A stretch of DNA of 64,000 nt from Chlorokybus atmophyticus (GCA_009103225.1 RHPI01000773.1:334003-398002); one strand, 5' to 3'. Counted from the stretch's first letter, positions 52,249 to 57,223 are shown. A program made the numbers and translations. The notes: a model not told the origin generated them from the letters alone.

Positions 52249-53479
52249 TCACCGCGCGGGACCGCGCGTTGCTCTGTCCTGGGACCCGCCCCTCCTCGGG
52301 TCCCGCGACCGGCCAAAGTAGTTGCCTGTCATAAACCTGCGTGCAGTAAAGTCATAATCAAACACCACAAACAGTTCACACCTATGGTTGTGTGAGAGTG
52401 CTACTGGCATACACACAACGTTGTATTAACGGATGTTGTACTTACCATATGAAAGGTATAGCTAACAAGCCTCGCCAACCGAGGAATACTACCGCTGCAA
52501 TGACTGCGCAATAGTATTTCGCCGGCACCTGAGTTGTATTATAGTGATGTGAACTGAAGTGCGACATCATGTCATACCAAGTTTGTAGACATAGCCATAA
52601 CTACCTGCAACCCAAATATAGCAGCATCTGGTAGGTTTAGCAGCGCTGTGCCGGGCGGCTGGTGAACCAATCTGATGGCAGATAACAGACATTACCTATA
52701 CAAGTAACATGCACATCACAAGCTGACACTGAACAGTCGATTACAACTGTGTATGCGGAGAGAGACGTATGCGCACACACATGCACATGCATGTGCACAT
52801 ACACATGCATGCATACAAGCATGCACTTGGGCAAAGTACATGTATCGTTTTACCACAACCAGTGCCAAAACACGTGCATGCACGCGCACACATGCGTGAG
52901 CATGCACACATGCACATACGCGCACACAAGCGCACGTGCCCGCGCATAGCGTATGTACATCTTTTACACAACCGATGCCAAATATAAATACCCAGATGTT
53001 GAGGTTGTCATGCACGAGGAGTACCAAGATTTCACTCACTTCAAGGGTGGTGCATTCCAGTCAAATGCTCCCGATATGCCTGTTTGAGGCTGAGGCGCCT
53101 GAGGCGCTTGCCCGCCTGAATAAAACAATGCAATAGTATATGTCATGCAAACGCACGCCGTGACAAACAACAACCCTTGACATTCTGTCGGACCAGCAGT
53201 GGTTGTTCTTGTGTTAGTGGATGATGACGCCAAAGGCGTTGCATAAGACGTTGAAGCGGTGGCCTGCGTGCGGCTGCGTGCCGCTATAGCCCTCGGATCA
53301 TCATCTGCATATGTAAGAAAATGAATGACTGGAATAAGATCAACAATGTTTGAATTTCTACGTCACTTTACTACTTCATCAAGCTTGCACAATCCTGCAT
53401 GTCAGCATACACTCCGTTGGCAAGCACACTGCCTGCATCGCTCACCTGGTACAATCTCGCCGTTGATGATACGCACCAT
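52249..53479 (-). CDS. FAM241-like (DUF4605-like) small membrane protein
   Basis: Spliced product begins MVRIINGEIVP|DDDPR, matching the FAM241B-type MVRILANGEIVQDDDPR start as recalled. It ends with the TM segment VPAKYYCAVIAAVVFLGWRGLLAIPFIW and a final exon FMTGNYFGRSRDPRRGGSQDRATRGPAR*. Confidence 0.75.
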
Positions 53480-53877: not shown

Positions 53878-56315
53878 ATGCCCAAGGTGCGTTTGTTGCC
53901 GTGCTCCGCTCGCCTTTGCAGCGCTGCAGTTGGTCACCTGCATCAAAACTTGTTGCACAACCCTAATTCTGGCTTGCTGTGTTGACATGCTTGCATTCGT
54001 TGCTTGACTTTTGTGTCTTTGCATCATCACACTGGAGATTAACAATGCCTGTGTTCTGAATCTTTCTCATCCGCTGTGGCAGAGCGAGTCCCCCCCTCCT
54101 CGCAGGCGCCGCAGGTATGGTAAACACTGCAGGCATTTGCTGCTGTTTCGGGCTACTTGGCTACTTCCTTAGTTCCCAATTGATTACCAATGTTGTGTGC
54201 CGCATCGGTATGGTTGTCGCTACTAAAGTCATGCCAATGACAGGGCAGTTGATCCTGATTGTGAAGGCTTTGTGCATACATGACTAGGGGCTTGCAAGCC
54301 ATGTGCAGTAGCTTTGCACTTGCATGTACTGTTTTCAGCAGCTTCAGTGCATTCATCTCCAGTGCATTGGACAGCGGTGCCTGCTAAACCCTGCAGTACT
54401 GCCTTGCTGCAGGGTTTGGAAAAAGTACTTGTGTGCTCCTTGTTTGCATTTGCACATGTGGCACTCACAGCTAATATTGCACTGTGTTCGCAGCCCATCA
54501 AAGTCGCCCTCAAGATCCCCTCCTCCCAAAAAGCGCGATGACGACGAGTAAGTGCATAACCAACACACACACAGAGAGCGGTGTCAATTACATCTTGTTG
54601 CGATGTAGTGCAGCTGCAATATTGCCCGACTGTCACACTCATATGCATATTGTCCCCTTTTCTGCGCAGAAACTCAATAAACCCCGGCAACAATTTGTAT
54701 GTGTCTGGACTTTCGGTCCGCGTCACTGAGGAGCAGCTCAGGACGCACTTTGAAAAGGAGGGCAAGGCAAGCAGCTGTTTGCGATGATCAGCGATGGTTC
54801 TTTGGCAAACTGTGCCATTATGTGCACAGGCGTGCCTGCACGCATGCGTGCATGTGTACGTCTGCGAGCGTGCGCGAGATTGTGACTGTGAAAGAGCGTT
54901 GCTTCATGGCTTTATGTTGAGTGCAGGTCTTGGACGCAAGGCTAGTGCTTGACCCGCGCACAAAGGAGTCGCGAGGGTTTGGTTTTGTCACGATGGCAAC
55001 ACTGGAGGACGCCGACCGTGCTGTCAAGTACCTCAACAAAAGCGTCCTGGAAGGCCGCGTGCTGGCGTGCGAGAAGGTGAGCACCAGTACATATGTGGTG
55101 ATGGGTGAATATATAATTAGACAGATGCATGTGGCTTGCATGTGGCGCGCGTGCTATCATTTCTCCAAACTGAGCGTTGGCTGTGGCCAGTTCAAGCTGT
55201 ATATAGCCCTTTGCTACTGCAACAACATCAACATCATCAGCAACAACTTCATCAACTACTTCATCAACATCATCATCAACAGCCACAGCCACAGCAACAG
55301 CAACATGTGTGCGATGATGGTCTGATCTCCCTCGACTGTGCTTCATCGGCCCCAACCCACTGCTAGTTTGGAAGTTGATGGCTCCAACAACACAAGTCCA
55401 TCCTGTCGTCACCGTCGTCCAACAGCGTCCAATACCAACGCTGTGAATACTGCATGCATTGTTATGTGCACCTACGAGCCTGGCTCTTTGGCCGCTGGTA
55501 CCTTGTGCATGCATTGTGACATGTTGCATGCATGGTTGCGTGTGTAGACAATGGCTGTCGTGTCAGGCAAAAAGAAAACGTGAGAGAACACCCACACCAG
55601 GCTCTTACTTGGGCATGCGTGGTCAGCGTGATTCAGGTGATTGCCCTATCCGTTGTTACTGCGCGCAAGTATATTTACATGCTGCTTGCCCGTGTGTGCG
55701 CGTGCGTGCGCTCACAGGCCCGACGCATCAAACCTCGGCCCCAAACCCCCGGAAAGTATCTCGGTTCACGCTCGGGTGTAGGTGGGTGCCTATCACCCCA
55801 GCAGATAAGATAGAGTTGTAGTAGTTGGGTGTGTCTGTGTTATTTCCGCAGCATGGTTGTTGGCTAGAACTGACCAAAACCTGTCGCATATGTGTGAGTC
55901 GGCGCTCTCTTTGCACAAGGAGGAATGTCTTTGGGTGCAATGCTTGTTTGGGGAATTGGTTGAGTAGGTCGAGTAGGACAGGTTGCGCAGTGTTGGGTTA
56001 CCATGCATGGGTAGTGGAGCTGGTTCAGGCACAGGGCCGATTCCTGTGAAGGCGTAGCTGCATCACATTATGTGAACGCGTGCGAGAGAATGTTGCCTAA
56101 CCCTCGCAACGCGTGTGTCTGCAGGACCGGAGCCCTCGAGGGGTGGCCGAGACGACCGTGACCACAGGGATCGTGACCGTGACCGCGATTACCGGGACAG
56201 GGACAGGGACCACCCCCGGGACTCACACAGGCGCCGGACATCCCCACGTTACTCCCCTTATGGCCGCCGCAGATCCCGCTCAAGGTCCCCCCGCTACTCC
56301 CCGTACAGGCGCTGA
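53878..56315 (+). CDS. SR45a/Transformer-2-like RRM splicing factor with alternative duplicated exons
   Basis: Exons 53878-53886, 54083-54114, 54494-54547, 54670-54766 (NPGNNLYVSGLS), 54927-55076 (SRGFGFVTM RNP1), then 55567-55636 or 55718-55775, then 56125-56315 (RD/RS tail). GC-AG intron at 54767-54926. Confidence 0.9.
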
Positions 56316-57223
56316 CTGCCCTTTGACAAGTATGAATACTCGGCGAGCAGGTGTTGAGAGTTCTGGTCAGCAGGTTTTGCATGGCGTGGTGAGTGTTAGT
56401 GTTTCCCTGTCGTATGCTATCCTACCCTCCCCACATGTGTGGGAAGGACACCCTGGTAGCACAATTGTGTGCATTAGTTGGGTTAGGAGAGGTAGTGACG
56501 CTTGCACGCAAGGGGTGAAATGTGGAGGGTTTACTTCTTTGTTGAGTTTACTGTAGTGCAAACGCACCCCACCCAATGGGTCGCAGGTCATGCACGGCAC
56601 ATCTTTGTCTAGGTAAAGGTTGACCCGCACTGACTGCAGTTAATCAATACAGCCACACGAATTAGCTCAGCTACCAGCAACAAGTGTGGTTGGGTTAGGC
56701 ATGTGGCTATGGCTGCTGAGATCTATGTACACTCCAGTTGTGAAGGCTGTGTTATAGCAGACATTGTTGTATGCCTGCAAATCAGTGATTGAGCAGTGTC
56801 TTGAAATTGAATCACCCAGTATAACATGATCCACCCCTACTGCGGGTTGAGCAGGCTTGATTTGCTGGTTAGTTTATCACTTAGTTGCGTGTGTGCGGCA
56901 TTGGCCTGCAAGCAGTCTACTTGGTACACAGCCACTATCTACCACTGGTCTAGTTGTGTGTTTGACCAGAGTGCATGACGGCACCATCACAAGGGACGAT
57001 GACTACTAAACCCGCACATCAGCGCGTCAATGTCAAACACCAATCAATTTGCCCTTCTGCAAGTCGACTCTCATCATCTCCAGGAATGCAACATGCCACA
57101 CCACTTGGTAGACTGCTACAACTCCTCTCACCAACACCTGCCACTATGTACAAGTCAACTCACCTTCTACGCCACGTGCACCACCCAGTAACAAACTGAC
57201 ACGCTGCTGTGTGCCACTGGTGT

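Follow-up and report, generated by a model that had tools for sequence, protein, structure and literature searches.

A tandem pair of candidate mutually exclusive linker exons downstream of a poison cassette exon in the SR45a/Tra2 gene of Chlorokybus

Introduction

Tandem-duplicated exons that are used in a mutually exclusive manner, with the choice enforced by the reading frame and nonsense-mediated mRNA decay (NMD), are known from animal cases such as FGFR2 IIIb/IIIc. To our knowledge, descriptions of mutually exclusive exon pairs from plants and algae are few. Poison exons are found in animal TRA2B (exon 2) and in the genes for SR proteins, in several kingdoms (PMC11791180, PMC4379411), and plant SR45a, in Arabidopsis and in maize, gives rise to several mRNA isoforms, some of them non-productive (PMC8195531, PMC4598772). 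We found no report in the literature of a duplicated SR45a linker exon. In human Tra2-beta, the eight residues SITKRPHT (194–201), which follow the RNA recognition motif (RRM), take on order when RNA is bound; they run across the beta-sheet and take part in the recognition of AGAA. Besides AGAA, the protein binds CAA where this lies in a stem-loop (PMC3045587).

Here we describe an SR45a/Tra2 gene within a 64,000-nucleotide stretch of Chlorokybus genomic DNA (the window). The Chlorokybus lineage branched off before land plants arose. Two features of the gene are at issue: a pair of small exons, A and B, each encoding a version of the linker that follows the RRM, and a 307-nt cassette exon upstream of them. 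Both are of known kinds, namely tandem-duplicated alternative exons and unproductive Tra2/SR splicing, and no new principle is involved.

Like the FGFR2-type pairs, A and B are adjacent exons that are homologous on the evidence of their peptides, are similar in length, have a common phase, encode the same structural segment and break the frame when both or neither is included. Unlike those pairs, use of B alone was not seen here, the exons are tiny (70 nt vs 58 or 64 nt), and their host is an early-diverging streptophyte alga. With plant SR45a the gene shares orthology, the arrangement of an RRM between two Arg/Ser-rich (RS) regions, the RTPTPGxYLG linker and a phase-0 intron at VEK/AKRKR; in contrast, one exon encodes the linker at those land-plant and zygnematophyte loci that were examined. 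The likeness to TRA2B applies to the cassette exon (55191–55497) and not to the exon pair. In both cases a Tra2-family gene carries a stop-containing cassette that enters a sizeable share of the transcripts, and the cassette is kept in a sister Chlorokybus species. However, the exon lies before the RRM in TRA2B and after the RRM exon in Chlorokybus; there is no sequence similarity between the two, which are GAA-rich in animals and CAA-rich in Chlorokybus, and in the alga NMD and autoregulation are putative.

Results and discussion

The transcript contigs

A run search returned six runs, of which four (X1, X2, X3 and X6; two studies) were examined. All four consist of assembled contigs, whose RNA origin is evident from the GT..AG introns that they skip; since contigs drop rare variants, they show presence and not absence. 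Contigs of X1 and X2 match the window at 99% or better. A second version of the gene, 90–95% alike, was found over 54489–55637 in the runs from 2021: in X3, in X6 and, beside the first version, in part of X1. We take this second version for that of a sister Chlorokybus species, which fits the five cryptic Chlorokybus species sequenced in 2021, the genome strain having later been renamed C. melkonianii (PMC8611356). The co-occurrence of two versions in X1 fits such cryptic species together with some library carry-over within one study. An Illumina adapter is present in X1 as a loose end at 54685.

The gene and its relatives

Exon-by-exon translation places the spliced gene at 53878–56671 on the + strand, on which all its parts described here lie. 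The coding part of exon 1 (53878–53886; ATG CCC AAG) is followed by the donor GTGCGT and is joined to exon 2 in X2 (joint 53886>54083). Exon 2 (54083–54114; joints in X2 and X3) opens an N-terminal RS-rich region with SESPPPRRRR, which continues in exon 3 (54494–54547; PSKSPSRSPPPKKRDDD; joints 54114>54494 and 54547>54670). In P0035, the database entry for this gene, the N-terminal region reads SESPPPRRRRSPSKSPSRSPPPKKR and is rich in Arg, Ser and Pro, its exons being borne out by the contig joints. The RRM is split over exon 4 (54670–54766; NPGNNLYVSGL...EKEGK) and exon 5 (54927–55076), and the intron between them (54767–54926), which lies inside the RRM coding region, is of the GC–AG type (donor AAG|GCAAGC). 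This intron, recognised by a joint that skips 160 nt, was spliced in all four runs, as were the other upstream introns. Exon 5, referred to below as the RRM exon, ends in phase 0 with ...ACEK at 55076, directly before GTGAGC. Its translation is 100% identical to P0035, and Pfam PF00076 (RRM) is on record both for P0035 and for the relatives of this exon. The last exon (56125–56671) begins behind cag, in a frame that requires one carried-over base, and encodes an RD/RS-rich C-terminal region ending in RSRSRSPRYSPYRR, an ending that is identical in Sphagnum and Physcomitrium proteins. It contains the stop codon (56313–56315) and the 3' UTR, and is covered by an X2 contig (56122–56671). The layout is RS–RRM–linker–RS.

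Homologues were sought with the RRM exon alone and, in a whole-protein word search, with P0035. Among the best 120 of 502 matches, the relatives bear the names SR45a (many land plants) and transformer-2 (Marchantia), and P0035 is the sole protein from the Chlorokybus genome annotation; the orthologue appears to be single-copy in Chlorokybus. The linker characteristic of Tra2/SR45a, R-TPTPG-x-Y-[LM]-G, is present in exon A as RTPTPGSYLG. It takes the form RTPTPGxY[LF]G in 39 of the 40 other linker-bearing proteins retrieved and has RNPTPG in the remaining one. The gene shares its phase-0 intron at VEK|AKRKR with the loci of Sphagnum (L009), Marchantia (L011), Closterium (L010) and a metagenomic streptophyte (L001). 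A PDB search with the 50-residue RRM exon, which is half an RRM, gave generic RRM matches and did not single out Tra2. With the features of the family found wherever they were tested, sequence comparison identifies the gene as an SR45a/Tra2 orthologue; the names of its relatives, the linker motif, the RS–RRM–RS layout and the VEK|AKRKR intron together uphold the identity that an earlier note on this DNA had assigned to it.

Contigs of up to 53 kb from freshwater or soil metagenomes (L001–L007; JGI, ENA and Logan) contain a streptophyte SR45a gene, beside which lie a gene for glycogen/starch phosphorylase and a fragment of an LTR retrotransposon.

Exons A and B

The earlier note had described two candidate exons, each with its own acceptor, after the RRM exon, both starting in phase 0, ending in phase 1 and separated by an 81-nt intron. 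Reading and translation of the DNA confirmed the coordinates, the splice sites, the phases and the intron. Exon A (55567–55636, 70 nt; cag|GCA...TCAG|gtgatt) encodes AKRKRERTPTPGSYLGMRGQRDS, with the first base of a Gly codon at its end. Exon B (55718–55781; ARRIKPRPQTPGKYLGSRSGV+G) has two candidate donors, after 55775 (GTGTAG) and after 55781 (GTGGGT). The short form (cag|GCC...TCGG|gtgtag, 55718–55775) measures 58 nt and the long form, which extends to 55781 before |gtgggt, 64 nt; the peptide is ARRIKPRPQTPGKYLGSRS(GV), again followed by the first base of a Gly codon. Both exons have CAG before and GT after them and are 1 mod 3 in length, and the intron between them (55637–55717) has GT..AG ends. 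The pair does not follow directly on the RRM exon, since contig joints place the 307-nt cassette exon (55191–55497) between them.

The A and B peptides are identical at 10 of 19 residues, TPGxYLG included. An ungapped comparison of the first 19 residues of exon A with the window, at 127,882 positions in six frames, gave more than 7 of 19 identities at B alone (10/19; the runners-up had 7), and the motif [TSQ]PGx[YFH][LMIV]G has two sites in the 64 kb, which are exons A and B. As DNA, the two agree at 21 of 57 bases and at 1 of 19 third codon positions. MAFFT, given both exons with 40-nt flanks, did not align them and found no common sequence in the flanks, so that the homology is visible only at the protein level. 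This failure to align as DNA is what could be said for a resemblance due to chance, or for a B that was recently copied from another, already diverged SR45a gene without ever having served as an exon at this locus. Such an origin can hardly be right: the unique best match in the window is found 82 nt downstream of A, shares its phase and has splice sites; no donor gene is in sight, P0035 being the only protein of the Chlorokybus annotation among the best 120 of 502 matches; and the B acceptor is used in vivo. On sequence grounds, the resemblance of A and B is beyond chance and the two are homologous exons in tandem.

The consequences of their inclusion for the reading frame are as had been claimed, in that both exons together, or neither, disrupt it. 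Worked out exon by exon, the mRNA with A alone encodes a protein of 200 residues with both RS regions; with B alone it would encode one of 196 or 198 residues in which the linker is the alternative one. When B follows A it is read as PTHQTSAPNPRKVSRFTL, and a stop is reached at 56159–56161, 12 codons into the last exon. The product is without the C-terminal RS region; no exon junction lies behind the stop, so the mRNA need not be degraded. Without either exon, the last exon is read in a wrong frame, which stays open.

In an alignment anchored on TPG, the post-RRM extension of human Tra2-beta falls at the start of the A and B peptides (KRKRERT vs RRIKPRPQ). The role in RNA recognition that the earlier note had stated for the linker is supported, as the Tra2-beta segment that corresponds by alignment contacts RNA (PMC3045587), and an exchange of A for B would alter an RNA-contacting segment. 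Exon B retains only QTPGKYLG of the linker motif, the first Thr of TPTPG being missing, and PRPQTPGKYLG is confined to P0035 among the linker-bearing proteins retrieved. Thr-Pro sites number two in A and one in B.

Transcripts that contain A or B

Exon A is joined to the RRM exon in X1 (55076>55567) and to the last exon in X1, X2 and X3 (55636>56125), and in X6 the sister species' exon A is joined directly to the homologue of the last exon. A thus serves as the default in at least two species. Joining of A to the B acceptor (55636>55718) was found in one X2 contig with a depth of 6.8, compared with 83.8 for the contig that joins A to the last exon, contig depth being a poor measure. This contig is unspliced past both B donors and continues to 56030 (255 nt read through). 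The B acceptor is functional, and the 81-nt intron between A and B can be spliced. The joints 55076>55718, 55775>56125 and 55781>56125 were absent from the contigs of all four runs. As contigs may have lost rare variants, this amounts to an absence of evidence, which nevertheless places usage of B well below that of A in ordinary cultures. Mapping of the junctions that the earlier note had listed therefore accounts for both joints of A and for the A>B joint, and not for those that lead from the RRM exon to B or from B to the last exon. As to the two linker isoforms that it proposed, A alone was seen, while B is backed by homology, by the phase lock and by selection on its frame-0 peptide (see below), with no B-only joint in the contigs.

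Since the A>B joint is the sole observed use of B, B might be an add-on switch that acts after A, its frame shift giving a protein with the first RS region, the RRM and the linker, without the C-terminal RS region, as a second truncating or unproductive output of the gene. The reading of B as PTHQTSAPNPRKVSRFTL, followed by a stop in the last exon with no junction downstream, is as such a switch would have it, and truncated SR45a isoforms without an RS region have been described in plants. Nevertheless, the joint between B and the last exon that it requires was not seen in the contigs of the four runs, and it leaves unexplained why the frame-0 peptide of B has been conserved, B being translated in another frame when it follows A. 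We consider an add-on role unlikely and favour B as a substitute for A, a reading for which the substitutions between the two exons argue.

Evidence for selection on exon B and the origin of the duplication

At all ten residues shared by A and B the codons differ, and three first-position differences are Arg/Arg or Leu/Leu. A dN/dS comparison had been suggested in the earlier note; made between A and B within the genome by the Nei–Gojobori method, it gave pN 0.47 and pS above 1, with synonymous sites saturated, and it speaks for selection on the frame-0 peptide. When the differences at each codon position were kept in number and scattered randomly, at least 10 identities arose with P = 3e-5. 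In a relic model, in which A changes synonymously only and B decays neutrally to the divergence observed at positions 1 and 2, at least 10 identities had P = 7e-5, and retention of all of TPGxYLG had P = 4e-5. This rejects neutral decay and indicates that, over most of its history after the duplication, B was maintained as frame-0 coding sequence, its basic residues and TPGxYLG having, we infer, been preserved through synonymous changes. Frame-0 selection on B would point to the mRNA RRM exon > B > last exon, the sole one that reads B in that frame. Past selection on B does not prove its present-day use.

Conservation in relatives, which the earlier note had also raised, gives a divided answer: within the genome, B compared with A rejects neutral decay, whereas the four more distant streptophyte loci (Sphagnum, Marchantia, Closterium and the metagenomic streptophyte) have one linker exon each (4/4). 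With a single linker exon in these four relatives, the duplication would have arisen in the Chlorokybus lineage, or else have been lost elsewhere. A metagenome scan for a B-type linker, using back-translated PQTPGKYLG, gave one match (L013), which was rejected as a chance match with no RRM nearby.

The same data bear on the possibility that B is a disused exon, after the duplication long an alternative linker and now a cryptic acceptor that gives rise to rare, functionless A+B or partly spliced RNAs. This would be in keeping with the transcript contigs, where the A>B joint is the only one, its contig depth is low, the downstream intron is unspliced and the B-only joint is absent from the contigs of the four runs; it would also be in keeping with two candidate donors that are both poor matches to the U1 consensus and with the deviation from a near-invariant RTPTPG. 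Yet the frame, the AG and the GT of B are intact and its core motif is perfect, and retention of TPGxYLG under neutral decay has a probability of ∼4e-5 at the observed divergence, so that any disuse would need to be of recent date when set against the age of the duplication. Disuse seems to us rather unlikely. The substitution pattern of B argues for a translated substitute for A, either still so or so until recently, and we would put this at a little short of an even chance.

A possible frame-enforced choice between A and B

The contigs show RRM exon > A > last exon as the default mRNA. Under the mechanism that we propose, B would be a tandem duplicate of the linker mini-exon that originated in the Chlorokybus lineage, and would most likely replace A at a low level or under particular conditions. 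Exclusivity would be enforced by the reading frame alone, as each exon is 1 mod 3 in length, the 81-nt intron is spliceable and no RNA structure stands out. A search of 55077–56124 for competing RNA structures gave inverted repeats that are short or are built of the self-complementary CATGCATG common in the genome, and the fold of 55540–55810 has z = -0.27, with no docking/selector arrangement. A would win by default through its better donor and its purine-rich AGAA motifs, which are of the kind bound by Tra2; B has neither. The A donor, CAG|GTGATT, fits U1 better than the B donors, CGG|GTGTAG and TAG|GTGGGT, and A has two AGAA and 59% purine, as against no AGAA and 45% purine in B. G/C at third codon positions is ∼35% in A vs ∼72% in the RRM exon, which looks like selection for an A-rich enhancer. 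The form with B would have an altered RNA-contacting extension after the RRM and one Thr-Pro site, compared with two in A.

Evidence against exclusive use comes, besides the missing B joints and the read-through of both B donors in the contigs, from the departure of B from the near-invariant RTPTPG, from the sister species in X6, which joins A to the last exon, and from the four relatives with one linker exon. We regard mutually exclusive use of A and B as plausible but unproven, with a probability of roughly 0.45. Alternative exons that swap part of an RNA-binding surface in a splicing regulator could shift the splicing of many targets together, and, if exclusive use were proven, tandem exon duplication with a frame-enforced choice would have been available early in streptophytes.

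A bolder version of this scheme, which we think improbable, is a frame-locked switch in which the AGAA-rich exon A needs SR45a itself, such that low SR45a activity, stress or an unsampled life stage would lead to the skipping of A and the use of B. If it were true, the protein produced by the switch would differ in its RNA preference and lack one proline-directed phosphorylation site. Combined with the CAA-rich poison exon described below, the switch would amount to a self-sensing, three-way choice of splicing in a streptophyte that is among the earliest to have branched off.

The poison cassette exon

Contigs of X1, X2 and X3 join the RRM exon to the 307-nt exon (55191–55497, 1 mod 3; joint 55076>55191) and reach 55497. 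From there they either splice to exon A (55497>55567; X1 and X2) or keep the 69-nt intron (55498–55566), which is retained in contigs that are continuous over 55469–55595 (X1, X2 and X3). Joints for inclusion and for skipping of the exon were both found in X1, and a large fraction of the assembled transcripts carry the exon. Its inclusion leads to an early stop, an in-frame TGA at codon 45 that lies upstream of further junctions, and it is present in part of the mRNAs, as is characteristic of a poison cassette. The isoform that carries the stop is presumably unproductive; NMD and self-driven inclusion are putative. The exon is also found in the relative represented by X6, with about 7% divergence and small indels. 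Comparison by blastn of the introns between the RRM and linker exons of five loci gave no similarity, so that the poison exon cannot be traced by sequence outside Chlorokybus.

The clearly regulated splicing event at the locus is this upstream poison exon and not the A/B pair. An autoregulatory poison splice had been offered in the earlier note as the alternative to two linker isoforms; this reading has the better support, mainly through the stop-containing cassette at 55191–55497, which the note had missed, and less at the exon pair where the note had placed it. The exon has 18 CAA triplets in a CAN-repeat tract, and that this tract is an autoregulatory binding platform of the Tra2 type is only an idea. 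Regardless of how A and B are used, the exon shows that in this early-diverging streptophyte alga, too, a Tra2/SR45a isoform is made that carries a stop and is presumably unproductive.

Over the CAN-repeat tract (55211–55310) the summed contig depth is 900–2260, a value due to similar repeats in other transcripts.

The public gene model and the surroundings of the gene

P0035 (jgi/Chlat1/5736/Chrsp38S05579, 243 aa) is the model of this gene in the public Chlorokybus annotation and spans 53878–56315; its name is the basis on which the window is assigned to the genome strain. The model is wrong in three places. The GC donor is missed, with the loss of 17 RRM residues; the first 116 nt of the poison exon are taken, with an unsupported donor; and exon A is translated out of frame (QKENVREHPHQALTWACVVSVIQ), after which exon B is in frame. 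None of the junctions special to this model is among the contig joints of the four runs.

The self-complementary CATGCATG is scattered through the introns of the gene and explains most of the inverted repeats found there. Upstream of the gene, at 52750–52950, CATGCA, GCATGC and CACA repeats are dense.
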